A stretch of 64,000 nucleotides of DNA from Lepidodermella squamata (taxonomy: Eukaryota > Animalia > Gastrotricha): assembly GCA_047495785.1 (NCBI GenBank), contig JBLDXI010000026.1, positions 62,001-126,000 on the forward strand, given 5' to 3'. The notes under the pieces are model-generated. The model was not told where the DNA came from. It saw only the letters and a list, made by a program, of their open reading frames with translations, and made no database searches. This document shows positions 1 to 46,936 of the stretch, piece by piece. Made by a program: the position numbers and the translations under genes. Position 1 is the first letter of the stretch, and every line of letters starts with the position of its first letter.

Positions 1-1196
1 ACACATTTTTGCACCGAGCGAGCGAGCGGCCGGCGCGTGTGCAGTTAATCAAGAGGCGGCGCGACATGATGCAGATATCTATTGAAAAATTCGATATATT
101 ACATATAATATAAAAGCGATGAGTTTCGAAAAAACCAAGCGCAATGAAGCCATATGCGAGAGAATGAGAGAAAGAGCAGGCGCGGCAAAACGTGTTAGCG
201 CCAGAGCTTTGTGACTGCGAACAAATTATTCGCGAGCGCGATCTACGCTCAGTATTATTAGATTGCTGGCTTTAGTTTTTTAGCGTGCTTCATACTACAG
301 TAATAACAAGAGAACCCGGGCGCGCGCGCTCGCGCTCACGGTGCAAAAATCGTCGTCGCTGATAAAAAGACACGCAAGTGCTCAACCGCGCGTGTATGTA
401 TTTTGTTATACAAGAGAGCAAATGTGAGCGATGTTTTTAGTTGTACTATCTAATAAATGAAGACAAGAAGAGACGGCGGCGCGATACACATATTACTATA
501 TACAGGGAAAAAACCACTTCGTATAATGGTTTAATGTGCGAAAAATTTATCGACCGTTCGGCTCTCTTTTTTGACAAAAGACTCGAGTAATAAATAGCGT
601 TTGGCGCCTCTTTTCTAGAGTTGCTCTCTCGCTTTAATATAATTACAAAAAACTTGTTTACCCTTCACTCACATGGGAATTCAGGGGGGCGCACAATGGA
701 AGTAGTGGTGGTCGCAGAAGGAGGCCGTAAAAAAACGCAAAAAATGTATACATTGGGGCGATCCATAGCGCAGAGCAAATAGTTGCAATAAAAAACCACT
801 AAGCCGTAAGTTGAAAAAACGTTCGCTCGGGGTAATACAGAATGAAATGATTTTGACCCCCAGGTATTTCCATTTGTAAAGCAAATAATGCTAATGCTCC
901 TATGAATTATTCACTAGAAAATCTGTTTTTTATTTCAATTATAATTAATTGAATTTGCTATCGTAGGTTTTCAATTGTAACCTCATTAAAGTCTTACCTA
1001 CTTTGTACAAGAAATATTCAGCTGCAAAAACCATCCGAAACTTCGTAAATATCTAAACGCTATACTAGAAAATATTTTACGATCTAAACTACACATTTTC
1101 TGCTAATTTAGGTGTTTTGATCTTTTTACTGTATTTGATTGCCCTTTCCACGGAAATTATGATGCAGTAATCGAAATGATGTGATGATTGACTTAC

Positions 1197-4100
1197 AGGC
1201 GAAAATGAACTCGGTGTTTTTGTTTGGTTCGAATTGAACGAAGAAGAGCTGAAGAAGCCGCTACTGTTGCTGGTTGCAGCCGGTAGGAGGCAGGTAGTCG
1301 AGAACGAAGTTGAGCCAATCAATGACTGATCGTGCTGTTGATGCGAATTGCTACCAGCAGGTGGTGGTGAATTATTCGTCGTAAAACCTCGCGCCGGATG
1401 AGTAGCTATTTCCACAACCGTAGTAGTAACGTGAACAGAGGCAGGCGAGCCACCAGGTAAGACTGCCGTAGATTTCACGGTAACTTGTTGTTGCTGCTGC
1501 TGCTGTTCACCAATCGACTTATTGCGGTCTCGCACCATTTGAGCAGCTGGATCTGCGGAGTTGATTAACGACTTGCGCGGCGGTTTTTCCGGAGGAACCG
1601 CCTTAACCGGCTTATCATTCGGCGTCGTCATCGTCGTCGGCGGCAAATTACCCGATGATGGAACGAGGTGCAGCGCCTGGCACGGCGCAACAGGCTGTAA
1701 ATAACGCGCAAGAATAAATAAACATCCACCTTAAAAAAGCAATAATAACAGAACAAAAAACCAAAAATATTATGTTCTTCTCTTGAACAGGTTCGATTTT
1801 AATAAGGGCGAATTTTTTGTTCACTAGCGGATAGGCATGCGCAAAGAAAATTTAAGTGCACATCAACTTGCGTTAGAGAGAAGAGAAAAAAGAATAAAAC
1901 CGCACCTATCTAGCACAGACGAAACAGATGAATAAATACGTAAAAAAATAAAACCGCGAAAAATTCGATGCGCCTCAAGGTGAGCTGACGCTGCTCTGTA
2001 ATAATAAACCGGTGGTATAGAAAAAACAAATGCTTTTTTGCCGGAAAAACTGAGCGGATTTTTTTATTATCATATCGAAACGCAAGACTAAGGCTAATTT
2101 TTCATCACTTTTAAGCTCGCGAGCTGCTGGAAAAAATATAATTGCTCACATACAGACGTGCGCCAATATGACGCCAGCTATTTTTTAGGTTTTTTGTTAT
2201 TAGCAACACACATCGCAAAAAACACTGCCGATTAATTTTATTACCGGTCGTTAATAGCCGTAAAATAATTTATGAAAATCACTGACGATAAATCATTCGA
2301 TAAGTTGACGCGAAATAAAATTCACAGACGACTAGCGGGGTTGAAAAAACACACACCCAATAATGCTTGAGTGTTATATTAAAAAGTTATTTGTGAAAGT
2401 GATCGATGAGTTTAAAGGTTGAGCAATGCGTCAATATGATTTCAAAATCCAATTTCATGACGAGCAATCAACTTACTGTTATCCAGAATTCGTTACAATT
2501 TTGGCTGCATTTCTGAGGGATCAATTAGTGGTTGATTAATATCTCAGTGAAGACATTCGCAAAATTGTTAATTTTAAAACCAGGCGGGGTTAGATCTAAG
2601 GAACAAGTCTTGCCTACCTTCTGTAATTACGGTGGAAAAAATCAATAGTAAAAATTAGCTTACACAAGGTTGCTTGCAGTGTTTAATGACAATTTCATAA
2701 CGGGTACAAGATTTTTTATGCATCGAGATAAGTATGCTAATTATTCCGCTGCGAAAAAAATTGCCAGTTGCTGAAAATGCAGCGTTGATTTTAGCGTAGC
2801 AGTCGTTTTATTGCCGAGATTTTAGCTAATGCTGGCAATAAAACTTCGAGTTAGGCGCCCTAGGGGGTCGAGCGCGGCGGCTTTATTACTAGGGGCCGCG
2901 GCTGGTCGTGCGCGAGGTCACGAAGAAGAGTAAGATTTTTCGAAAAACAAAATCTGATCGCGCGACGACGGCGGAAATGACAGAACGCGGCTGTAAATAA
3001 TAACAGCAACAACAATAAATATTATGCAAATAAATAGCCCATTTGTAAAACGATCACGACGTTTTGATGACAGCCAGCGCGCGCGCGGGATCGGTCACCA
3101 CTAATAACCCGCCGGCTACATAGGTATCACAAGGGCAGTAGAACAAAACAACTTCTATCGCGATACTATTTCTTGTTGCCATATTGTTTCGCGGCGCGTT
3201 TTGTTCGGCCGCGGCTCTTCCGGGCACTTGAATCACGGCCCAGCTTTGTATTATTCTATTTTTAACACGCGGCTGATCACGCGGGTTTTTAATAATGACC
3301 CGCGCAAAAGGAGTGTATATTGCACTAGGTAAACAGTACCTTGAGCCGATTGCGTATTCGAGCGAACAGCGAGGCGAACGACGATTTTTGTTTGCCCACA
3401 GCCGTCGTAGTTCTTGACGTATCCATTTTATTGCTGCTATTTGTATTGTTGCCACCTGTCGCTGTCGGCGGCGATAGCGGTGCTTGGTCGTTGTTCTTAG
3501 CCTTCTTATTACTGCTCTTACTCTTTTTCTTCTTCTTAGTCCGAGTCGGTGATGACGAGGGTGGTACTTCTATTGACTTTTCGGTTGTCACAACAGGTGG
3601 ATCGTTCATCACTCGTTGCTTTGCTTCGCCATTTTTGCTGATATCAGCATTAATTAATTGCTGATGATGATGTTGATGATGACCGCCAGACGCCACGGCG
3701 ACAGGTTCAAGAGTTGGGCTGTTATCATCGGTAACTACGCCATCGCTCGGCGTCTCATTCTACAATAAACAAAAAAATGGTTAGATGAGTATGAAAGGAG
3801 TTGGCGGTTTAAATAATATCCATAAATCCCAGCAATAGCTTGGCAAACTTTGAGCTTATCTATGGACTATAAAGGTAACCTTCATAACTGGTGAAAACGA
3901 ATTTCAGAATTTATTTCCATCAATTTTGAAGGTATACAATGCGAATAAAAAATCAAGGTAAATTAAATTAAATAAAAAATCATATAAACACTGAACCTAA
4001 TTCCACTGAAATTGATGACCAGGAAACTGAGGTAAATGACTAGTAAAAACCGAATTTTCACCTGATGGTAAAAGTATCGCAGAAATCGATCTCACAAAAG

Positions 4101-33403: not shown

Positions 33404-34908
33404 TTGTCTTTATCTATCACCGTTACGGCTGTACAAAAACTGGCCCAAATCGTCCTATCCGGTGTCCTGGTCTCGCAATCATGTAGCCAACATCGAAAAG
33501 CAATATTCGTCCTCAAATCAAGAAGTCATCAAATTCAATTTTCTGCAAATTTTCTAAGTCGAAATTCCGAAATCGTCCTTCCCGCCGTGAAAGGGTTAAA
33601 CAGCTTTATTACTTCAATAACTATTCAAGGTCAGTAGTTATGCGCCGTGACAGTTTGTACCTATAATCATGTCACCACTGTTGTTCGCGAACAAGAGGCA
33701 TAACATAGAATAACAAAGAATAAAGAATTACCGACCGGTTTTTTTCGCAAATAAGTTTCATTTTGGAATTAAAAAATATTGGCCCATATATAGTCGTCAA
33801 ACTTTGGCGCGTAATTTTTCTGCCATATTTTCAGATTTTCTCCGCTTCAGTAAAAAGTGTACATGGCTGCGCTATGAACTATATTCAATCTATATTCTAT
33901 ATTCTATATATCTATATTCTAACTATAGATATCTATAATGTAAATTACCGGGTTCGTACCAACATATGCGGACATATGGACATCTGTATGTCCGCATATG
34001 TCTGCAGACATTGCAGTATACAAGTAGGCTCTATTAAATATCGGTTTCAATTAAAGTTTAAAGTTAAGTATAATATAACATACTGGCTGATAGGCGAGGA
34101 CCTTCTGATCAGCAGCTAGTCGTAATTGTGATACTGTAATAATCCTAAGATCCGAATATTCACATTTTAACTGCAGTTTTCAAGTTGAAAGGCATGGAGC
34201 ATTAGAGGCTTGTTCTGCCGCGTTGCCAACGATAAGATTGTAACGGTGACAGGTATTCAAAGTCAAAGGTTCTTGACCGATCGACCCGACTTGTATGATA
34301 TTAAATGAAGTTTAGCAAAAACACGTTCGAATGTACGAAACTAAAAGGCTTTTTATTTACGGCTGAACCTAGCTACACTTGTTGATCTCCAAAGCGGAAG
34401 ATGATATAAAAGTATAAAATTTGGCCTGTTTATAGGCATATAGGCGGAATGGCATCAGGTTATTGCTAGCACGCACTAGACAGGAATAACAATTCGTGGC
34501 GCGACACGTGCTATTTATTAAAGGTGTCACCGCCACACTCGTCCGTGCTTCGGTAAATCCGAAACCGGGTGGAACTAGCCAGAAAATAATGACGAAGTTT
34601 TCATGGAATTATGTAATCATGATCACAAGACAGCTGTTGTTCAGATCATTGACATTTTAACCTGAGTCGGAACGTTGAACGGTGAATCGGAACGGTGAAT
34701 AGCACAGACGGTCGGAGGGTTAGATGTTAGATGTGCGGAGGCCATTAGAAACGAATCGAACGAAACGTGTTGATGCCAAGGATGCTACCACGCGGGATTA
34801 TAGGTATGGTTCGCAGGCGCGGACCAAGTTGCCGGAATATTGCCGGGCGAGAGTCGGCGGTCGAGTGCACACATCGAGGAAGGTCGGGAAGGCACATATC
34901 TATGAAGT

Positions 34909-35196
34909 CTACGGTGAACTATTTAGCTTGGCGAGCTTCCAGCATTGTTTCATGCATGGTGCGCTCGCAAACGGACCGACACTGCCCATATTGCATAGGA
35001 ACTGTAAGCAATCCTTAATTAGCTTCGCTTTGTTTCCAGATCTAAGAAACTGTGAAAATCGCCAATCCATTGGTTGATCAGGACTAGGCTGTGAGCTGAC
35101 AATCGGAAGCGCCTCGTTTGACGTGACGTAGCTGCTTAACACTGTGAACAGAATTGCTGCAACGGAAGCGCTTAGGGCCATAACAGGAGTCTTCAT
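34909..35196 (-). CDS. 4-Cys secreted peptide precursor, subfamily I copy C
   Basis: MKTPVMALSASVAAILFTVLSSYVTSNEALPIVSSQPSPDQPMDWRFSQFLRSGNKAKLIKDCLQFLCNMGSVGPFASAPCMKQCWK. Confidence 0.85.
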   Translation of the reverse strand: MKTPVMALSASVAAILFTVLSSYVTSNEALPIVSSQPSPDQPMDWRFSQFLRSGNKAKLIKDCLQFLCNMGSVGPFASAPCMKQCWKLAKLNSSP

Positions 35197-36927
35197 GTTT
35201 TTAGTTTAAACGATAATATCCTCCACTTGAGCGAATTTAGCTATCTGACACCGCACTTGCTGAATGCTCATTTTTATATCTATTATCTATATCTATATCT
35301 ATATATCTATATCTATTATTTCTTTTATATCTCATTTCGATTTCAGGGAAATAAAAGATGAGTCAATTTCATCTTTGAAATGACTAGTTTTCATCTTCAC
35401 CAATAATGAGACTGGGAAATGAGAGCGCGGTAAATGCAGTAACTTTCAATAGCTATTTTGATGTTATTACGCCAACAATAGTAACGAATATCTAATTAAA
35501 TTCTCATAGAGCAGGTGAAAGCAAGCTCAATGGCGAGTCGCAAAAGTACTCATACAACGCAATGATTCACCGTAAAGTTATTTTCTGTTTTTTTAAGGGA
35601 TGAGGTTTACAATTTATTGAGAACCTGCTCTTTGCAAATAATAGAACCTCAAACAAGTCAACAGTATGGATCAACCATTAATCGATGAAAATGGTTAAAT
35701 TTAGTAGCAATACATTCAATTTCCAAGATTGATCATGCTAAATAAAGAGCCCCCTAATTACTTCGCGCGTTTCCCCTAAATAGGGTGGCTCAAGTACCTT
35801 GTTTAAGGGGAAGCTTCACTGTACCCTGAGCCCCTTAGTTAACGTCTAATTAGAGTGATTTGTTTTCTGGTGCACCCCTATCGGTATGTAACATTCTTCT
35901 GAAAGAATAAAACTGATGCACGTTATTCGTACTGAGCAGCGGATAAGTTGAACATCTTCAGTCTTGATACCATAAAAATAAATGAATCCATAGTGAAAAC
36001 GAGGTTTTTGTATCGTAACAACGGTTGGGTTGCCCAACTCATATCTGATACCACGTGAATGAGCAGCTCGCATTCTATTGGTATTAAGCAGAGATGAGAA
36101 TGGGTCGGGTCATTTGGGTCTTTTTTGGGAAGCCAGTCCGGAGAACCCGTACTGGGTGTAGTGGGTTTTCCCGCTACAAGCAATCTCATCTGAGCCCTAT
36201 ACGACAGGCACACAGACATCTGGCACCGGTATTGAGGGCTGGGGTAGCACACCACGCATTTCTAGGTAGCGTGGCAGGATACAATGGGAGACAGTAAGTT
36301 TTCCCAAACCGGTAGTCTAACCGGTAGATGCACTGGTATTAGGCAACTGATGGCTCGGAGTATCCCACAAAGTTTGCTGGGGCAGCCACCAAGTCAAGCG
36401 GTACCACCACGTCAAGGTTCCAGTGCTTCGGCCCGTTTTTTTATTTGGGAAAATTATTCCCAAGGGCTAGGGCCCAGTGGACCCATCTAGAGACCAGTGG
36501 TCCCGATGCCCTTAAAGCTGCTTTCTTTCAAGTTGAAAAAAAGCAGACTGAGCTCCCAAGGAGCCTGCCAGGTACTTTTATAGGCAGTGGTGTGCGCCCA
36601 GTCCGCGCACTCCCTATTGCTGGACGTTCCCATGGTGATGGCGTTCATCTTGCGGGCTAGTGGAGCCCGAAAGGTAGCCTGCAGACAGTGCCGTGGGCCG
36701 TATGGCCGCTAAGGCCAGCTTAGTGCCTCGGAGTGACAAATGGTCGCTGGGCAAGTGACCTGCCATCATGGGACCCGTGTCCTAGAGGAGCGGTAGTGCC
36801 TCCATAGGGTGCGGAGTAGTGTCGTCGAAATAAAAAGTGGGTGCCACTCATCTAAGAGTACTATGTCGCTAACAATGTTTTATTAACAAACGCCAGAGCA
36901 CCCAGTTGATGCAAGCACAGTTAGTGT

Positions 36928-37400
36928 TCAGTCGCTAGAATTGTCCGGGTCACCCCGTCGGGCTAGGCGTTTTGCTTCGTAGCCATAGATGACGGCGCAC
37001 CAGCATTCCGGCCAGGGGACTGTATCTGGGGTGTTCTGAGACTTCTTCCGCCACGTCTGTTGTACAATAATGTTCCAGAAATTGCGCAGTACGCAACAAG
37101 CCTTGCGATGCTTGGCCACATAGTGTAGGTAGATGCCGTAGATCCGTCGAGCAGTAAAGCTGCATTGACGGAAACCGCAGATGAGCTTTTCTGGTTCGAG
37201 GCGGAAAAAGGGAACCCTCCGTTTTTCCGACCAGATGGTCAGCCACCAGCTGTGTTGACCGGTAGCACGGCCGCCCTCGGACTCGGGGTCGACTGGCCGG
37301 GGGAAGCCGGCAAACTGGCTGGGAACACCCGATTCCGGAAGTTCCCATTCTCTGTTAGAACAGCGAACTGCGCTTCTGCCCAAAGGCAGGGTGACTCTAC
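36928..37400 (-). CDS. ATG-less 3' exon of PLE unit 1 encoding a C2H2 zinc-finger module
   Basis: C-x4-C-x12-H-x4-H (CGFRQC...HYVAKH); preceded by a pyrimidine tract + CAG; homolog conserved in unit 2; AATAAA follows the stop. Confidence 0.8.
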
Positions 37401-37581
37401 CTGTCAACGTGGCAAGAGGCAGTAACGAACGATATTACTTTTATTCAACTCCACAAAATGTTTCATAAAAATAGAGATGAGCCAATAGTAGTTCAATAGT
37501 CTGTCGTGCCGTACACGTCCAGCCCAAACGGGTTGGCCACTACTGGCGTCCAGCAGTCCCACCTGAAAGTAAAACAAGTGG

Positions 37582-40500
37582 TTATAGTCGGAAATTCGAG
37601 CGTCTGTAACGCTGGCTTATGGTCCTATCCAGTCTGTACGTCAGGGGGATTCGCTGCCCGATGTGTCGCAGGATTGGAAGTAATGTCCTGCTAAAGGTGA
37701 CCACGCATGTGTCCCGGAGGGGCCTGTATGGGCGGCGTGGTCTCGTGAAAGGCCATGCAAGAGCGCTCCGCTCCCTGCATACTTGACGCAGTGCCACAAC
37801 AAACTCCTGCCAGCTGTAGCCCCGCTGACGTAAGCGCAGGCCTAGCTGCAGGCAGGCCGTCATGAAGGCCTGGTGTGTCTGACAGATCCGCAGAAACCGC
37901 AGAATCTGCCCGCGCATAATGCCCGTGAAAACGTGCACCGGGTGGTTTGAATCGCCATGGAGTAGCGCAAGGTTATCAGTGGGTTTAACATGCAGTGCAG
38001 TGAGAAACCTGTCGCCGGAACGGCGAACCGCCACGTCCAAGTAGTGTTGGGAGTCGACGGCAATGTCAGCCGTGATCCGTATGTTGGGGTGACTACTCTC
38101 ATAGGAATCCAGGTAGTGCTGTAGACCCTCGCGCATGTGGGAGATGGAGAAAATGTCATCAAGAAACCGCGTTGTGAACAATGCCCCAGTGCCAAGGGAA
38201 AGCCAGCGCTCCTTGTAGTAGAGCCAGCAGATGGCGACTGGCGGGGATATATTACCCCCCATAGCGAGACCGCGTATTTGTTTATAGAATTTCCCGTTGA
38301 AGGACACTGTATTGTGCCTCAGGACGAGTTCAGTCAGTTGGCTCACTGGGAGAATAGCTTCCCCTGGTAGCCTGTGAAACTCATCAAGGTACCATCGGAC
38401 CGCCACGACAGCCTCGTCAAGTGGAACCTGATTATACATGTCGTTTATGTCGGCCGACATCAGGAAGGTCTCGCGGTCGGGGTCACGTAGGTGAACAGAC
38501 CTGAGACGTGCAATAAACTGGATGGTATCCTTTGCAACGGTATTTAGGTTATTCCATATTGGAGTACGGTTCGCTATTAGGTGGCGCAAGTGGTGTTCAC
38601 CCTGCCGAAAGCGGGTGCCACCAATCAGCAAGCTCAGTACACGGTCGAGGCCGGAGGTGTAAGTCTTAAGGCCATCCGTGATAGGCCTCACCTTTGGCCA
38701 GCCGTGGGCATTCAGCGGCTTGTGGGTTTTGTAGTTGAAGTACATGCATTTAAGTCGAGGGTTAGTGATAGCTGGAACCACCTGTTCATGGTGAAGGCGG
38801 AACCAGCTGTTAGTCCGGTACAACTCACTACATAGGTCTTGCAGGTCGGAAATGAAAGAGTCGTAACCGTCGTCAGAGACGGGCTGCCACATGTTCCGGT
38901 CGCTAAGGAAGTCCTCGCCAATGGCTGCGTACCGAGCGGCGCTGTCTACTATGAGAATATTACTTTTGTCACTCCTGGTGAGCACCACGCCCCGCGGAAG
39001 GCGGGGTGGCGGGGTTTCCCTGCCCAGTGCGGATATACGGGAGAAGGCGATGCGACGCAAGCGCTGGGGAACATGGACACCATTGGTCGCCGCAACACCA
39101 AGTAGCTGGTGATAGCGGCGTAGTTGTTCAGCCCTCACTCGAGGGACAAACTTAAGGCCTTTTCCTAGTAATCGTAGTAGCGATGGTCTGACGGAGTCAG
39201 TCAGATCAATGATCCCGAACTGGCGTAGAAGCCGCTGATTTTTAGCCGAAAGGTTGAAGTTAACCCCCGCTGCGGCGTCACGCTCTTGGTAGAAGCTGGG
39301 TATCAGCTCCCCAGGATAGAACGCGGCCCATATGTTATCAAACGAGAATTCCAACTCCCACAAGTGACCGGGGTGGCGGTCTGAGAGGTGGCGTGTCAAG
39401 GCCGAGTATGTGTTTGCAAAGGGCGTAGGGCCACACCCACACAGTAATTCAGTCTTCAGCCGACTACAGACTATAGTGTTTCTGCCGTCAGGCGGCGCCA
39501 TGTAAGGCACGACCTCCCAAGCCCAGTACCTGTTAGGGGTGGACAGTAAGTAGCTAAGACTATTCACGACAGAAGTGTTACCACTATGGGTGTGATATTG
39601 AACGAGGTCAGTCCAAGTGAGAGTAGACCTACCTTTGCCGTTGCCTGTTGGTGGCGGTGCCGTGACGTTCTTCAGTGGAGTGAACGCGAAGGTACGCAAG
39701 GGAGCCGGTGGGGTGGCTGCAGTCTTGTCGGGCTGAGCGCGGGGTCGCTGGATAGGCTGTGCCGGTGCAGCAGGGCCGATCCCCGGTACGGTCAAATCCT
39801 GTCCGGGGTGGTCAAGCGTGACCTGTTGTTGTTGACCAGGCGGGGGGTGCGGAGGGGCCGGCGCAGTTGAGCCAGTGCCAGGCGCGGGATAGTCCTGCGC
39901 GGTTTGTGCAGTACGCGGGTTCTGACCAGGTGACAAGTCGCGAGAGAGCTCCAACGATGATTCCATAGTGTCATGGAGAGCTGCAGCATCAGCAGCCTTC
40001 ATAAGCAAGGCGTCGTGGATAACGCGGTCAACATGCTCGACGAACAGCTGGAGGATCTCGGACTCTGCCGTCGGTTTGGCAGCACGGAACTGCCCAATTG
40101 GCAGACCGAGGTCGAGGCCGAAAATCTCCTCCGGCGACAAGCCAGGTAAATCAGGTCTCGCGCTGGTGGGCCAGTGCCCAGCTGCAAAGTGGATTCCAGA
40201 CATCGGCCATTTAGCGGCGCCCTTTTTGTCATGTAGCCAAGTGTAAGCACGCAGGACCACGTCGTCCGGTCTAGCGACAAGCTTCAAGGCATTCCGGAAG
40301 TCCTCAAATTCAGTCATAGCTTTGTAGACATCTGCATCGTCATGCAGCTGCTGGAGTTCAGTGAAAGCCCGGTGGGCCGCAGCTGCAATGCGGGGACGAA
40401 AAACCTCCGTACAAGCGGCATCATTCAGGCTGAACGACTTGGCGACCTCTTTCATGGTAGCATCATCTCTTTCCGACCGGCGCCCCATAGCCCGGAATGC

Positions 40501-40731
40501 AAGTTTGTAGGAGCAGTGCTTTGCAGAAACCAAGAATTTCCCGCATAGTATCTGCGCTTCTTGGTCGGACTTAGCCGGAGCGGGGGTGAGCTCGTCGCCT
40601 GGCGGGGTTTCGTGGAGCCTCTTCATATCTGCCAGCAAACTGGTGAGGGCATCGTTTTTGCTCAGTTTAGCTGGGGGCTGATCCCTAGGGTGTTGTTGAC
40701 CCATTCGTTTTTTCTGGTGGAAATTGCTCAT
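37582..40731 (-). CDS. Penelope-like reverse transcriptase, 1049 aa, with N-terminal extension and C2H2-like finger, no GIY-YIG
   Basis: KGLKFVP, SDKSN, YKTHK, VRPI, SADINDMYNQVP (motif A), YKQIRGLAMGGNISP (B), RFLDDIF (C), YLDV (E), KPTD...DSNHP...GQILRFLRIC...RGY thumb typical of PLEs. Confidence 0.93.
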   Translation of the reverse strand: MSNFHQKKRMGQQHPRDQPPAKLSKNDALTSLLADMKRLHETPPGDELTPAPAKSDQEAQILCGKFLVSAKHCSYKLAFRAMGRRSERDDATMKEVAKSFSLNDAACTEVFRPRIAAAAHRAFTELQQLHDDADVYKAMTEFEDFRNALKLVARPDDVVLRAYTWLHDKKGAAKWPMSGIHFAAGHWPTSARPDLPGLSPEEIFGLDLGLPIGQFRAAKPTAESEILQLFVEHVDRVIHDALLMKAADAAALHDTMESSLELSRDLSPGQNPRTAQTAQDYPAPGTGSTAPAPPHPPPGQQQQVTLDHPGQDLTVPGIGPAAPAQPIQRPRAQPDKTAATPPAPLRTFAFTPLKNVTAPPPTGNGKGRSTLTWTDLVQYHTHSGNTSVVNSLSYLLSTPNRYWAWEVVPYMAPPDGRNTIVCSRLKTELLCGCGPTPFANTYSALTRHLSDRHPGHLWELEFSFDNIWAAFYPGELIPSFYQERDAAAGVNFNLSAKNQRLLRQFGIIDLTDSVRPSLLRLLGKGLKFVPRVRAEQLRRYHQLLGVAATNGVHVPQRLRRIAFSRISALGRETPPPRLPRGVVLTRSDKSNILIVDSAARYAAIGEDFLSDRNMWQPVSDDGYDSFISDLQDLCSELYRTNSWFRLHHEQVVPAITNPRLKCMYFNYKTHKPLNAHGWPKVRPITDGLKTYTSGLDRVLSLLIGGTRFRQGEHHLRHLIANRTPIWNNLNTVAKDTIQFIARLRSVHLRDPDRETFLMSADINDMYNQVPLDEAVVAVRWYLDEFHRLPGEAILPVSQLTELVLRHNTVSFNGKFYKQIRGLAMGGNISPPVAICWLYYKERWLSLGTGALFTTRFLDDIFSISHMREGLQHYLDSYESSHPNIRITADIAVDSQHYLDVAVRRSGDRFLTALHVKPTDNLALLHGDSNHPVHVFTGIMRGQILRFLRICQTHQAFMTACLQLGLRLRQRGYSWQEFVVALRQVCRERSALAWPFTRPRRPYRPLRDTCVVTFSRTLLPILRHIGQRIPLTYRLDRTISQRYRRSNFRL

Positions 40732-41348
40732 CGTTACAAAGTAAAGTCTAGAAATGCAAAGTCAAGCATTTGTAGGAAGCATTTGTCGTAAGCATTGTAG
40801 GAGAGCACGTCATGGAGATCGCGTGATCATGGGTCGTTTTGGGGTCGATGGGTCATTTGGGTCGTTTTCAGTCGCCAACATGGAATGGAAGGCCGAATGG
40901 TCCGCAGCCCCAAAATTCCGCTTTCTTTCAAATTGAAAAAAGGCAGAATGACCAAGTCCGTTCCCGTGACGCCGATTGGCGAGAGGTGTGCACCCGGAGC
41001 GCGCACTAAAGCGCGCACTCCAAGCAATGCGCCAGGAATGTGCCCCCGTGGTCCCGCAATAGCGGTCGCGGGCAGCTATGGCTCTCGACTCACGTGGCTC
41101 TGGTTCTGGCTCACGTGACAGGTACCCCCAGGAAAAGTCATGTCCAACACGAAGTGGACCGCCTGTGCGTCTCTAGTCCCCAGAGATGTGGTTGCAGTGC
41201 ACCACATTAGGCTACAGGCCAGAGCCAAGTGCAGCAAGTGACTTACTGGGGCATCACGGCGGGTGTGGTTGGTGATGTCAAAGAACAGACGTTTGATAGG
41301 TGAAAGGGCACACTTTTATTATGGAGCCAAGTCACAAAACAGTGATAG

Positions 41349-41824
41349 TCACGATGATGCTTCGCCATGTTCCGGAAGTTGGCGGCGGGTCAGCTTATCT
41401 TCATAGCCGTAAATCACCTCACACCAGCACTCCGGCCAAGGAACTGTGTAGGGCGAGTGGGAAGTCTTCTTTTTCCACGGCTGACCTACAATCAGCTTCC
41501 AGAAATTGCGGAAAATGCACCCTGCCTTCCTGTGGCGCTGCATGAAATGGGTGTACATGCCATATATGGTGCGGGTGGTGGCGCCACAACTACGGAACAG
41601 GCAGAGGAGTTCTTCGGGATGTGTCCGAAAGAACGGAACCTTGCGCTTTTCTTCCCACATGCGTAACCAGAATGCGTGTTGGCCTACGGCACGATCCCCC
41701 TCGGAGGCAGGATCCACCGGGCGCTTCAAGTTGGCAAACTGGCTGGAGCAGCCAGAGTCCGGCAGCTCCCACGCGCGGTTGGTGCATGTGTTTCCTCGGC
41801 GACTCAGAGGTAGCTGAATTCTGC
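41349..41824 (-). CDS. ATG-less C2H2 3' exon of PLE unit 2
   Basis: TTCACTTTCCTCTTGCCTTATCACAG|GC AGA ATT gives GRIQLPLSRRGNTCTNRAWELPDSG...CLFRSC-x12-HFMQRH...VPWPECWCEVIYGYE, aligning with unit 1. Confidence 0.8.
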
Positions 41825-41970
41825 CTGTGATAAGGCAAGAGGAAAGTGAAAAACACCGCTAGAGTAAGCATGGCATAAATGTTTATTCAACAAAATGCGT
41901 GACTCATATGTATGAAACAGTCATATAGAGGCAGTCCTTGCCTGGCATTGTTGTCCACATCGGCCGGTGA

Positions 41971-43094
41971 TCAGCGCGGCGCCACACCTGTAAATACAGA
42001 AGTGGGGGTTAGTGAGAACTTTGAACGCCTATAGCGCTGCCCGATGGAGCTCTCAAGCGTGTAGGCCAGTGGTACCTTACTCTTCAAAAATCCCAAGAGG
42101 GGGTTCAACGCCTTGCTGTAAGGCAAGGTGTGCGACGATGCATATGCCCTGCTAGGGCGGCGTGCTTTGGCGAAGGGCCACTTGAGTCCCTTGCGCTCAG
42201 CACTTACCCGGTGTAGCTGGGTAACAAAGCTGTGCCAACTGTACCCCCGTTTACTAAGGTGAGTGCCAAGTTGGACGCATGCTGACATAAAGGCGCTGTG
42301 TGTCTGACAGATGCGGAGAAATCGCAAGATCTGCCCGCGCATAATTCCCGTGAAAATATGGCGAGGGTGATTCGAGCTACCATGGAGGAGAGCTAAGTTG
42401 TCTGTCGGCTTGACGTACAGCGATGTCAGCAGTTTATCGCCAGAACGCTGAACGTTTATGTCGAGGAAGTGCTAACTATCCACCGCAATATCCGCGGTTA
42501 TCTTTATGTTAGGGTGACTGCCCTCGTAGGCATCAACAAAGTGCTCCAGTCCCTCCCGCATGTGGGAGATGGAGAACATGTCGTCAAGGAAACGCGTCGT
42601 GTATAGCGCCCCCGAGCCTACTGAAAGCCAACGTTCCTTATAGAACAGCCAGCAAATGGCCACTGGGGGCGAGATGTTTCCGCCCATGGCAAGGCCGCGC
42701 GTCTGCCGGTAGAACTTATCATTGAAGGAAACAGTGTTGTGCCGCAAGACCAGCTCCGTCAGGTCGCACACCGGCGCAATAGCATCATCGGGCAACCTAC
42801 GGAATTCTTCTAGATACCACCGTACTGCAGTGACAGCCTCAGAGAGGGGCACTTGGTTGTACATGTCATTGACATCAGCGGACATCATGTATGTTACACG
42901 TTCTGCGTCCCGAAGCGTGATAGCCCGTAGTCGCCTCACGACTTGAAGAGTATCCTTGGCGGTGGTATGCAAATTCCCCCAAATGGGTGTGTGATCCTGG
43001 ATTAACTTGCGGAGGTGTCCCTCACCAGGACGAAAATGCGTCCCACCAATGAGTAAGCTCAATATCCGGTCGAGACGCGATGTGTACGTCTTAA
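41971..43094 (-). pseudogene. 5'-truncated RT of PLE unit 2 with nonsense codon at 42472-42474
   Basis: SADVNDMYNQVP, GLAMGGNISP, RFLDDMF; DS*HFLDI vs DSQHYLDV in unit 1. Confidence 0.9.
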
Positions 43095-43657
43095 CAGTTT
43101 TTCTGTTTTTATTTCTTTCACGTCCTTCGGTTAGCGATATTAAGAACTGAAACACTGATTGAGTTAGAAGTTGAAAATTATCACAGAAGTTCAGCGCGAG
43201 CAAGCGTAAAGCGACGAAGTTTGATGTTCAATGTGGACAGGTCGCCAACGTCAATCGCGTACCGTCTTGCCAAAGTTCAACTGCAAAAATAGCCCAAACT
43301 TTAGGTATTTCTTAAACACCCAGTATCCCAGTCGAACGCGGGTCATATGAAAGTTATATAATTTTCAGCGATTCCATCATATTACTAGTCACATGTGATT
43401 GCAATATAGGAAATGTCGTTCTTTGTAGCTAACTTTTGAAGAAAATGTCACATCGATGGTTATATAACCGGCATATGATCTTCATATGACTTTGACTCAG
43501 AAGCTCATTAGCATATGCAAATATTTATAACCCAATTAACAATAATTAAAATGATAATTACTCAGCCCCCTGAGGTCTCAGGCGCCGGTAACCATTGCAG
43601 ATCCCCTCCAAACATTGTTTGAAAGAATCGAAAGACAAATGGGTCGAAGTTGACTTG

Positions 43658-43729
43658 TGTCGTCGGTTGGAGTCGAACCCGGGTCGCCTTGCCTTAGAGG
43701 TGGACGCGTTACCACTAGACCAGCTGGCC
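43658..43729 (-). ncRNA. tRNA-derived sequence (SINE head or pseudo-tRNA)
   Basis: Pol III A box TGGTCTAGTGG and B box GGTTCGACTCC at tRNA spacing; acceptor and anticodon stems do not pair. Confidence 0.6.
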
Positions 43730-44570
43730 ACTCTTATACCGTGATGGTTAATAGGGGCATATAAGTTTCCAGTCGGTTTTTTTCAATTTTTTTGATGCGA
43801 GTGTGAAGGCAAGTAAGGTGGGTTTGTCTGCTCATAGAGCAGTTGGAGGGAGGTCCATGAACACCCATGTCACTCAGGGTACACACAGAGGGTGCCTTGT
43901 TCGCGATATCGGTCATTTTGTATACCTATGCTTTATTTTTATTTTTTTTTGAAAATGTTTCCTACTGTAGTTTTTCGTGTGGATTCTAATGGTGAAATCG
44001 GTTTCCACGTAGGACACATAGTCATTATGATATAGCCGAATGAGGTATAGCCTATTTGTATCTCTACTGAACAGCCAACATTTGTATCTCATTACTTAGC
44101 TTCTTTAAATTCAATTTTAAATTCATCTTATTTCCCCTACCTCTTCCCGGCTTCGAATGCTCTTATTACCCTTGCTCTTATTCAGGTGTGAGAAATTGTT
44201 AGATTCCTGACCGTGCTAACTTTTGATTTTCACTATAGGACCCTAACCTAGGCCTACAGGATTTTGACTTTGATGTATAGCATTCATATTTCTGGCGTGT
44301 AACTAATGTCATGCTCACTTAGTACGAAAATCATATCAAAAGTATGCTGCAAATCACTGTGACATGAAGGTAATATGAAAATGGCATTACGCAAAAGTTG
44401 TTACGTAGTCGGCATACGACATGTTATATGAAAATGGCATAACAAAAAAGTTGTCATGTGACTGGCATATGACATTTATATAACTTCTTCGTTTCGAAAT
44501 GTGACCCGCGTTCGTCTGGGTATAATGTCTGCAAGATGATCTATGATCTATATCTATAGTCTGCAATGAA

Positions 44571-44864
44571 TTATTCAGATTTGGCGAGCTTCCATTGGAC
44601 GAAGCATTGGACGATGCATGATGGTATGGGATACAGGCCGACTCTGCTAATATTGCATCGAAACCGTAAACAATCCTCGAATCGCGATAGCTTCGCTTTG
44701 CTTCCAGGTCTAAGAAGTTGTGGCAATCGCCGATCGATCGGTTGATCTGGACTAGGCTGTGAGCTGACAATCGGAAGCGCCTCGTTAGACGTGACGAAGC
44801 TGATTAACACTGTGAACAGAATTGCTGCAACGGAAGCGCTTAGGGCCATAACAGGAGTCTTCAT
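44571..44864 (-). CDS. 4-Cys secreted peptide precursor, subfamily I copy D
   Basis: MKTPVMALSASVAAILFTVLISFVTSNEALPIVSSQPSPDQPIDRRLPQLLRPGSKAKLSRFEDCLRFRCNISRVGLYPIPSCIVQCFVQWK. Confidence 0.85.
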   Translation of the reverse strand: MKTPVMALSASVAAILFTVLISFVTSNEALPIVSSQPSPDQPIDRRLPQLLRPGSKAKLSRFEDCLRFRCNISRVGLYPIPSCIVQCFVQWKLAKSE

Positions 44865-45298
44865 GTTTTTAGTTCAAACGATAATTTCCTCCACTTCAGC
44901 AAATTTAGTTATGTGACACCGCACTTTTTATATCTCTTTTATATCTCAACTCGATTTCAGGGGAAATAGAAGATGATTCAATTTAATCATTCCATTGACT
45001 AGTTAATCTTCACCAAATGAGAGCGCGGTAACTTTCATTAGCTATTTTGATGTTGTTACGTCAACTATAGTGACGAATATCAATTAAATTCTAATAGAGC
45101 AGGCGAAGCTCTATGGCGAGTCGCAAAATTACTCATACAACGCAATGATTCACGATAAAGTTATTTTCCGTTTTTTTAAGGGATGAGGTTTACAATTTAT
45201 TGAGAACCTGCTCTTTGCAAATAATAGAACCTCAAACAAGTCAACAGTATGGATCAACCATTAATCGATGAAAATGGTTAAATTTAGCAGCAATACAT

Positions 45299-45780
45299 TC
45301 AATTTCCAAGAGTTGCCGTATTGTTTGTCCGGGTTGGTTTCGGAGGCCTCAATTTGTCGAAATCGATATTGCCGCCATCCATTCCCGATTCTGTCATAGG
45401 ACTCCGGCAGGCGTAGCCACAACCGGTGAAGCAGCAAATTTGAGAAGTCGATTCACAGTTGAAGCACAGATCTCCGCAGGTTCGCATAGACCCATAACGG
45501 ACGGGTGGACATTTTAGGACAGGCTTTACAGCTGCCGGTCGATTCGTCCCGCAATTCACCTTCTTGCCATCTAAGAAAAACTCAGCGTCGCAGTAACCCT
45601 GGCACGTCTGAGAGACGCATTTCGCATTAGGGTGGGCTGAATGATGAAAGCTGATTTTTACAAAAATTAATAGCAATAATGGACTTTGATTAACCTGAGC
45701 AGTTGGAAACTCGACACGGGTCAACAAAACATTGAACAGGTTTGGGACAAGGAATTGCGTTACCTCCGCAAATGTCTGCA
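45299..45780 (-). CDS. Cys-rich protein with WAP-like domain (exons 45780-45695, 45636-45299; 5' exon unresolved)
   Basis: CPKPVQCFVDPCRVSNCS|AHPNAKCVSQTCQGYCDAEFFLDGKKVNC module, then KPVLKCPP...CGDLCFNC...CCFTGCGYACRSP (WAP-like). Confidence 0.7.
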
Positions 45781-46936
45781 CTTGAAATAACCGTGAAAAA
45801 CACAATAATTAAGAACCTTATCAAGGTCATATTTTTTTATTGAAAAATGCACCTTACAACAAGCTAATCAGTTAGAACAGTCACGCTTGAGTTGCCAAGC
45901 GGCTCATCTGCTGTCCCTGAACAATGGGTAATGAGTAAATATTGCTCAAACGATGATTAAACGGACGGTTGATGAAGCGTTAAAGACGGTCCTGATTTAG
46001 AGCCAATGTCCAAAAATCATTGTCATGGTTTATTAGCTGACATGCGGCTCAACGTCTCCTGCAATAGGGTTGATTTGAAGGTTGAATAACTGGGGTGGAG
46101 CTAAGCGCGTCGAACAAGCGTTCGATGCACTTGAATGGCTGGATTATTTGATTATAGTTCAATCGTTCAAGCGCTTCGAACGTTCCACGAGTTCGTTTTT
46201 GTCAACGCTAATATTTGTCAGAGTTCGACTGTATAGGAAGAAACTTGGGCGCCATACACCTACTGTAACTAGTACTGAACTGACGAAATATGAACTATTT
46301 TTTAATATTTTTAGCACACGTCGAATTTTGTTTTCGCTTGTCAAGTCGTCATGCTTTTGTCTTGCTGGGACATACTCACCTAGTGGAAAATGAGCTATCA
46401 TACGAGATTATCTGGCGTTTCATAATCGCTTGTCAGAATGTGTCCTCATTTTATTAGGTTAATCTAATTTACTCAATTTTCCAATTTTCCACTGCAATAA
46501 TCTAGGGCAAATTTCATTTTAGTGCAAGTTCGCTCGGGTTATCCGCGATGCCTGACTGGTTCCAACTATGCACCCTGTCTCAGGATTAGCATCGCACTAC
46601 AAGAACGAAGAACTGAAAGAATGGAATCATAAGGTGTAACGGTAGTCACATGGAGGTCTCGTTAAGAGGAAACTGAGATCTAACCATGCGGAAAATTATC
46701 GCGACTAACTAAGCGTGAAATTCGAAAATTAACCTCCAGAATTTGAGCAAGATAAATACTTGTCTAAATACTCTACGCTATTCGCTATTTATCAAGGTGA
46801 CTCCAGCTTGGTGAATGGCGATTTCTCTTTACACAACCTTGAGAAACTTCTCATTCGGGGCATCAAACTAATCATTGAAAGTTGTGTTATAGGCCAGCAC
46901 TAACATCGGCCCGGATTATGCCGAGTCAAATAGATT

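Follow-up and report, generated by a model that had tools for sequence, protein, structure and literature searches.

A Penelope-like element of the gastrotrich Lepidodermella squamata whose reverse transcriptase may lie in an optional intron ahead of a zinc-finger exon

The retroelement described here lies in a 64,000-nucleotide (nt) stretch of the gastrotrich Lepidodermella squamata (contig JBLDXI010000026.1, positions 62,001 to 126,000; assembly GCA_047495785.1), referred to below as the window; element positions are given in window numbering and all are on the minus strand. By its motifs and domain matches it is a Penelope-like element (PLE) without the GIY-YIG endonuclease (EN) domain. Our analysis suggests that the locus probably holds a choice between splicing and polyadenylation, through which a single N-terminal region is continued either by a zinc finger and the reverse transcriptase (RT) or by a different finger alone. 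The primary transcript would have a single start codon and end at either of two 3' sites. If the donor at 39633|39632 is left unused, translation would read on into a 1049-amino-acid protein (N-terminal region, C2H2-like finger, RT), and the RNA would be cleaved at the poly(A) signal at 37445. If the donor is used, a 2232-nt intron carrying the whole RT and this first poly(A) signal would be removed, and the 366-amino-acid N-terminal region would be joined in frame to a 157-codon finger exon (37400-36931) in an RNA that ends at the poly(A) signal at 36884. Because a poly(A) signal lies just 31-57 nt before the acceptor in this element and its relatives, cleavage and splicing should compete, and the competition would set the ratio of RT fusion to RT-less partner, much like the Gag/Gag-Pol ratios of other retroelements. 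That the locus is spliced, and alternatively so, we infer from the following features of the main copy, unit 1:

40731-37582, minus strand: open reading frame 1 (ORF1), from the ATG at 40731 over 1049 amino acids to the stop TAA at 37584-37582
39633..40731, minus strand: coding part of exon 1, the ATG at 40731 plus 366 codons plus 1 nt, common to both predicted proteins
39627..39636, minus strand: predicted 5' splice donor AAAG|GTAGGT, last exon base 39633, GT at 39632-39631
37401..39632, minus strand: predicted optional intron of 2232 nt (3 x 744), derived from the donor and acceptor positions
37582..39632, minus strand: coding part of ORF1 that would be read on, with internal C2H2-like finger, PLE motifs, RT core, thumb and stop TAA
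37440..37445, minus strand: poly(A) signal 1, AATAAA, within the optional intron, 39 nt before exon 2
37401..37422, minus strand: predicted 3' splice acceptor A2, a pyrimidine tract and CAG, cctcttgccacgttgacag|G, AG at 37402-37401
36928..37400, minus strand: coding part of exon 2, 157 codons without an ATG, stop at 36930-36928
36879..36884, minus strand: poly(A) signal 2, AATAAA, 44 nt past the stop of exon 2

The frame of exon 2 is open from 37434 to its stop, and none of these 168 codons is an in-frame ATG; exon 2 of unit 1 cannot start at an AUG of its own. A second, truncated copy (unit 2) lies upstream of unit 1 and permits a test of whether the frame is coding. Over 156 exon-2 codons, the two units differ at a proportion of non-synonymous sites (pN) of 0.28 and of synonymous sites (pS) of 0.79, the latter saturated, and the RT parts of the same units give a pN of 0.20 and a pS of 0.80. 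Both off-frames of exon 2 have pN above pS, and identity at codon positions 1, 2 and 3 is 0.65, 0.77 and 0.36, respectively. Exon 2 of unit 2 is in the same phase as that of unit 1 and is 60% identical to it in amino acid sequence from the first codon; constraint over the first 51 codons past the AG is as strong as over the remainder. The 180-nt spacer ahead of the AG can be aligned only by opening many gaps, and the two units share only a 9-nt pyrimidine run, which falls in different frames. Near-identical copies in a public sequencing run depart from the window mainly at third codon positions; among the listed differences, synonymous outnumber non-synonymous ones by 6:1 in exon 2 and by 16:5 in the RT part. 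Exon 2 is intact in all copies, including the otherwise dead unit 2.

The same arrangement is found in other data sets. A search of 1.84 billion protein representatives with exon 2 yields four homologues of 165-226 amino acids, and each homologue with a readable contig lies behind an RT of this lineage or behind an AATAAA-acceptor layout. The related contigs are:

L001, 2056 bp: C-terminus of an RT with 39% identity to ORF1
L002, 1232 bp: finger exon, with AATAAA and acceptor ahead of it
L003/L004, 4.6 kb: complete element, with 32% identity to ORF1 counted from its residue 355
L008-L010, 1.0-3.0 kb: L003 is nearly matched by L008 and shares 80% identity with L009 and L010

The window's layout recurs in L001, L002, L003 and L009/L010; at least four other data sets contribute to the five elements that show the order RT stop, AATAAA, phase-1 acceptor and finger exon. 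Each of the five has one AATAAA at a distance of 31-57 nt before the YAG acceptor at which exon 2 starts, the exon-2 frame opens 4-12 codons before this YAG, and the G of the AG is codon position 1. In the window, exon 2 accordingly starts at 37400 with codon position 2, which makes the intron phase 1, and the acceptor A2 is kept in the same phase in unit 2, L001, L002 and L003. L001 reaches its first in-frame exon-2 ATG at codon 154, and unit 2 at codon 66. In the L003 lineage, a comparison of L003 with L009 gives a pN/pS of 0.25 over the 40 codons that precede the first ATG behind the acceptor, while the other two frames give 1.47 and 0.78 and contain stops; the constraint upstream of the first ATG implies that coding begins at the acceptor there too. 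Taken together, these patterns of substitution argue that the exon-2 frame is a real coding sequence under purifying selection from the AG onward.

A donor of the matching phase is present where it would be needed. The window donor splits Gly codon 367 (GGT) after its first base, in phase 1, and a simple 5' splice-site matrix places it second among the 182 GT sites of the element. It sits after a stretch with 24% proline and before the internal finger of ORF1 at 39441-39373. In L003, the donor CCAG|GTCAGT at 1127|1128 is also in phase 1 and within a GGT codon, and it ranks first of 119 GT sites. Both donors are located at the border between an unalignable N-terminus and the conserved finger-RT part. 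The equivalent intron of L003 spans 1128-3377 (2250 nt), so that an in-frame joint of exon 1 to exon 2 is predicted in both elements, and in both the stretch predicted to be removed contains the whole RT and the first poly(A) signal. Retention of the intron leaves the frame open, and reading continues into the ORF1 finger and the RT. The junction peptides would be GKG-RSTL on reading on and GKG-RVTL after splicing; the likeness of GRSTL and GRVTL is not conserved in L003 and is probably due to chance. The donor with the top score in the element, at 38691, was likewise taken as a chance site because it is in phase 0 and is missing in L001 and L003.

The original prediction had been made from the window alone, and its coordinates are all correct (both AATAAA signals, exon start and donor among them). 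It had described a frame of about 157 codons without an ATG that is conserved from the AG in unit 2, and the substitution pattern agrees, with constraint from the first codon. It had placed a strong phase-1 donor at the end of a proline-rich linker, which the rank of the 39633|39632 site confirms, and had derived the same two junction peptides as we obtain. It had also asked for donor conservation in other copies, and L003, the only other full-length relative, has a phase-1 donor at the same boundary. The alternative splicing that it proposed is thus supported by the constraint on exon 2, the missing start codon, and the layout and phase-1 donor shared with relatives.

A further candidate 3' end lies between the RT stop and the finger exon:

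37563..37580, minus strand: acceptor-like site A1, cacttgttttactttcag|G, directly after the RT stop

Conservation between the two units forms an island at this site. In L003 (3158-3220), L009 and L010, an equivalent of A1 is followed by a conserved tail of 15-16 codons (...ADGL and stop) in the phase-1 register. Between L003 and L009/L010 the short tail has a pN/pS of 0.31 with the stop in the same place, and a 1-nt indel in L009 puts the conserved tail out of the RT frame. The tails behind A1 in the window, of 7 and 5 codons, are not conserved. A third isoform is therefore possible, in which the N-terminal region would be joined to a short tail via A1. Whether a whole lineage of EN-free PLEs carries a conserved splicing and polyadenylation switch with up to three 3' ends (RT read-on, short tail, finger exon) is, in our estimate, evenly balanced.

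The assignment to the PLEs is based on the following parts of ORF1:

39441-39373, minus strand: internal C2H2-like finger
39171-39142, minus strand: PLE motif LLGKGLKFVP
38973-38959, minus strand: PLE motif SDKSN
38499-38098, minus strand: RT core, with FLDD at 38166-38155

The closest database relatives of ORF1 are proteins of 610-847 amino acids (E 2.7e-28 to 1e-5) with precomputed PF28514/PF26215 domains, and three of them have a GIY-YIG match at the C-terminus, one above the Pfam cut-off and two weaker. The best matches, P0001-P0003, combine RT and GIY-YIG and align with ORF1 over the RT core, the N-terminal motifs and the thumb, and LLGKGLKFVP, SDKSN and ILRFLRIC agree by eye with P0001-P0003 and L003. 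We take L..G..F.P, the DKG-like motif and the ILRFLRIC thumb motif to be PLE-defining. The Pfam RVT_1 match to ORF1 itself is weak (E 1.5e-4) and under the cut-off. ORF1 ends exactly at the RT-EN linker, where the endonuclease starts in canonical relatives, and no GIY-YIG domain is found up to E 1 in ORF1 or the downstream frame, and none in the L001 and L003 proteins. The Penelope-like identity in the original prediction therefore holds, since the nearest relatives with named domains are RT plus GIY-YIG proteins and the PLE motifs are present, and the lack of an endonuclease makes this an EN-free rather than a canonical PLE.

An exact look-up of the whole ORF1 gives no record, a metagenome scan gives two distant RTs, and a viral scan gives no match. 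A profile search with the RT lineage returns one unrelated tandem PLE contig without the finger exon. This ENA metagenome contig (L007, 1-17822) contains at least five tandem units of about 3.46 kb each of a different PLE, with DUF8422 and HTH_animal ORFs. The 64-kb window contains no TTAGGG dimer on either strand, and a hammerhead ribozyme has no Rfam match in 34000-46000 or in L001-L003, nor is there a CTGANGA core in the tails. The terminus of the L003 contig (4561-4589, CTGATGAG...GACGA) reads as the beginning of a hammerhead-like core that the end of the contig truncates, and it has no Rfam match.

The product of exon 2 is small and carries two recognizable elements:

37179-37108, minus strand: exon-2 finger, C-x4-C-x12-H-x4-H
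37014-36997, minus strand: WPECWC motif

Exon 2 also carries the motif C.N..WELP. These motifs are conserved across homologues that are 24-59% identical, and the C-x4-C-x12-H-x4-H spacing is invariant in six homologues. Against Pfam, exon 2 gives only C2H2 families below threshold. In an AlphaFold2 model with an overall predicted local distance difference test score (pLDDT) of 67, the finger is folded as two strands and a helix at pLDDT 80-90, and Foldseek matches it locally to 2drp and 1ncs with a root mean square deviation of 1.6-1.9 A over about 34 columns (E > 1). Searches with the whole exon-2 model return nothing significant by Foldseek on PDB, VIA-align wide or ESM Atlas; only weak rows of the ARS2/SERRATE-type finger recur. 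From the C2H2-type spacing, the model and the local finger matches, the RT-less protein may be a nucleic-acid-binding partner of the RT, and the finger protein could serve retrotransposition in a Gag-like role. An hhalign comparison of the ORF1 finger region (39373-39441) with the exon-2 finger region (37108-37179) gives a collinear match (E 0.021, probability 2%). There are thus hints, though this is not established, that the two alternative continuations start with paralogous finger modules. We also considered that exon 2 could be a degenerate GIY-YIG domain, as its VIYGYE and KRLARR motifs might suggest and as the original prediction had named among the findings that would count against it. 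This candidate was rejected because homologues end at WP.C.C without the motif and exon 2 has no GIY-YIG match.

The N-terminal region shared by both predicted proteins is less informative. Its final approximately 100 amino acids are rich in Pro and Gln, the 366 residues have no homologue in the protein search, and they cannot be aligned to the N-terminal 335 amino acids of L003. The AlphaFold2 single-sequence model is all-alpha with a pLDDT of 44 and is too poor for structure searching. A further splice-like site lies just ahead of the start codon:

40748..40760, minus strand: acceptor-like site upstream of ORF1, tttgcatttctag|A; the exon would start at 40747, 16 nt 5' of the ATG

This could be the acceptor of an intron in the 5' untranslated region (UTR), as in Penelope and Chlamys-3, or a trans-splice site. 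The counterpart of this tract in L003 is ttttag|, 15 nt before the ATG (approximately 100-106). The 5' UTR of unit 1 holds 3.4 copies of a 13-nt repeat (40764-40807), whose unit reads CCTACAAATGCTT on the minus strand.

Several points weigh against alternative splicing. The conservation of the donor is based on two full-length lineages only. No fusion of the N-terminal region to the finger is found among the database matches, all four of which are the short proteins mentioned above. The sole public run with the element consists of contigs of unknown library type and contains the unspliced genomic form, with no 39633-to-37400 joint, and no RNA run is on record among the sequencing runs that hold the element. 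In-frame ATGs occur in exon 2 of L002 (codon 29) and L003 (codon 47), where independent initiation is conceivable. Finally, an acceptor close behind an AATAAA would also be expected of an operon with spliced-leader trans-splicing. Under that explanation, exon 2 would be a separate downstream cistron; the RT message would end at the first AATAAA and a spliced leader would be trans-spliced at 37400. The distance of 31-57 nt from AATAAA to acceptor in all five elements is in line with this, as the intercistronic regions of trans-splicing animals have a similar spacing, and so are the similar acceptors 15-16 nt before the ORF1 ATG in the window and L003 and the ATGs of L002 and L003. We nevertheless regard an operon as unlikely. 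There is no in-frame ATG in unit 1 and none before codon 154 in L001, and in the L003 lineage the coding constraint runs from the AG, ahead of the ATG, so that an AUG would have to come from the leader, in register with an exon whose first base is codon position 2. Nor does the operon account for the phase-1 donors that rank at the top and hold equivalent positions in the two full-length elements.

Other explanations retain the exon and dispense with the long intron. Exon 2 might be joined to the RT by a short intron (CAG|GTGGGA, GT at 37562-37561, to 37400), in which case the finger would replace the lost endonuclease at the C-terminus. The end of ORF1 exactly at the canonical start of the endonuclease would fit, as would the RT frame of unit 2, which has no stop before an ACAG|GTGTGG donor in phase with the acceptor, and the CAGGTG island conserved between the units. 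This arrangement is nonetheless very improbable: a TAA lies seven codons before the GT in unit 1 and in a second copy seen in run X1, L001 and L003 have no GT donor there, the L003 motif is an acceptor (ttttccag|A) rather than a donor, and frame arithmetic puts the RT and exon-2 frames of L001 and unit 2 out of register. This last difference argues equally against translation of exon 2 from unspliced RNA by non-AUG initiation, reinitiation, stop-codon readthrough or frameshifting. Such translation would be helped by the agreement of the exon-2 and ORF1 frames in unit 1 and L003 (offsets of 2232 and 2250 nt, both multiples of 3), and the protein P0006 is called with a GTG start; but in unit 1 two or more in-frame stops lie between the RT and exon 2, the frame opens only a few codons before the conserved YAG, and the DNA conserved upstream is out of frame. 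We give this mechanism very little weight. The downstream frame could also be a decaying relic, for instance an endonuclease linker, without present function, given that it sits at the endonuclease position of canonical PLEs and has no Pfam match. This is hardly credible because the selection tests show constraint: purifying selection is strong in two independent lineage pairs, the frames are intact in every copy, and the motifs persist among distantly related homologues that have no similarity to GIY-YIG. The choice between splicing and polyadenylation proposed for this locus is thus the probable explanation.

Unit 2, used above for comparison, forms a retroelement pair with unit 1 in the window:

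41349..43095, minus strand: unit 2, a 5'-truncated dead copy of a diverged subfamily
43095-42010, minus strand: RT residues 688-1049 of unit 2, with an internal stop at 42474
41887-41882, minus strand: AATAAA before the unit 2 acceptor
41826-41825, minus strand: acceptor AG of unit 2
41824-41352, minus strand: intact finger exon of unit 2, stop at 41351-41349
41320-41315, minus strand: second AATAAA of unit 2
36498..36611, minus strand: conserved 3' tail, 70% identical to 41007-40898 behind unit 2

The truncated unit lies head to tail upstream of unit 1, and the two share 3' tails yet have saturated synonymous divergence. The saturation (pS about 0.8) implies that the units stem from different old subfamilies rather than from duplication of a single insertion. 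The true 3' end of the element is further downstream than 36498. A host gene that encodes a small secreted peptide is present on both sides of the retroelement pair (34909-35728 and 44571-45311); its two copies share the signal and pro-region and are about 9.6 kb apart, with DNA blocks 86-97% identical. Just upstream of the truncation point of unit 2, a tRNA-like stretch (approximately 43660-43735, minus strand; gtggccagctggtctagtggtaacgcg...ggttcgactcc) may be a fragment of a tRNA-derived short interspersed nuclear element, and ARAGORN makes no tRNA call there.

PLEs, the sister group of telomerase, are generally presented as single-ORF elements. The finger exon would be missed by annotation pipelines that expect a single ORF, because it has no start codon. 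If the proposed switch is real, some PLEs encode an overlooked second protein, composed of the N-terminal region and a novel C2H2-type domain, and the dosage of the RT is set by how splicing and polyadenylation compete. The PLE class would then have its first Gag/Gag-Pol-like dosage device. The switch would also require the intron to stay in the copied RNA, a point relevant to the unsettled matter of intron retention in PLEs, and would provide a functional reason for the long-noted survival of their introns on transposition. The layout as read from the DNA is thus that of an EN-free PLE with a potentially important expression strategy.

The canonical EN+ PLEs (Penelope/Poseidon, Neptune and Nematis), in which a single ORF encodes the RT followed by GIY-YIG, can be aligned to the window element in the RT core, the N-terminal motifs and the thumb, and have no counterpart of its N-terminal 366 amino acids or of the second finger exon. 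Closer in composition are the endonuclease-deficient PLEs Athena and Coprina (Gladyshev and Arkhipova 2007, as cited in PMC8557442 and PMC3846280). Like the window element, as far as they are described in those sources, they have a PLE-type RT without GIY-YIG and a long N-terminal extension, and they too occur in head-to-tail arrangements with a truncated unit. Unlike these elements of the telomere-attaching type, the window copy is internal, between the host gene copies, and it comes without a telomeric repeat in the window and without a hammerhead match. PLEs are known to retain spliceosomal introns (PMC8557442, PMC3846280), and the architectures in PMC8557442 (figure 1 legend) include conserved introns and an ORF1 separated by a frameshift, but not an RT in an optional intron or a finger exon behind the RT. 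The full-text literature searched contains no description of an RT-in-optional-intron layout; the primary Athena/Terminon papers were outside that search, and an earlier description is possible. In Chlamys-3_cRei, alternative splicing changes the protein N-terminus, as seen in Iso-Seq long RNA reads (PMC8557442). Both of its isoforms keep the RT and the endonuclease, whereas in the window element the RT itself would be the removable part.

Outside the PLEs, a similar logic is found in the choice between secreted and membrane forms of immunoglobulin mu, where splicing and polyadenylation are alternatives at a composite terminal exon. There, too, an internal 5' splice site lies within a coding terminal exon and an intronic poly(A) signal precedes the 3' splice site. 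The mu gene is a host gene rather than a mobile element, and the likeness is one of logic only. Among retroelements, Drosophila copia and related long terminal repeat (LTR) elements make Gag from a spliced subgenomic RNA. In copia, splicing drops the polymerase region and thereby yields the structural protein in excess over the enzyme from one promoter and one start codon, which is what we propose for the window element. Copia belongs to the LTR class, however, and its gag ends soon past the splice junction. The window element would instead add a conserved 157-codon exon with a poly(A) signal of its own, and would set an intronic poly(A) signal in competition with the acceptor.

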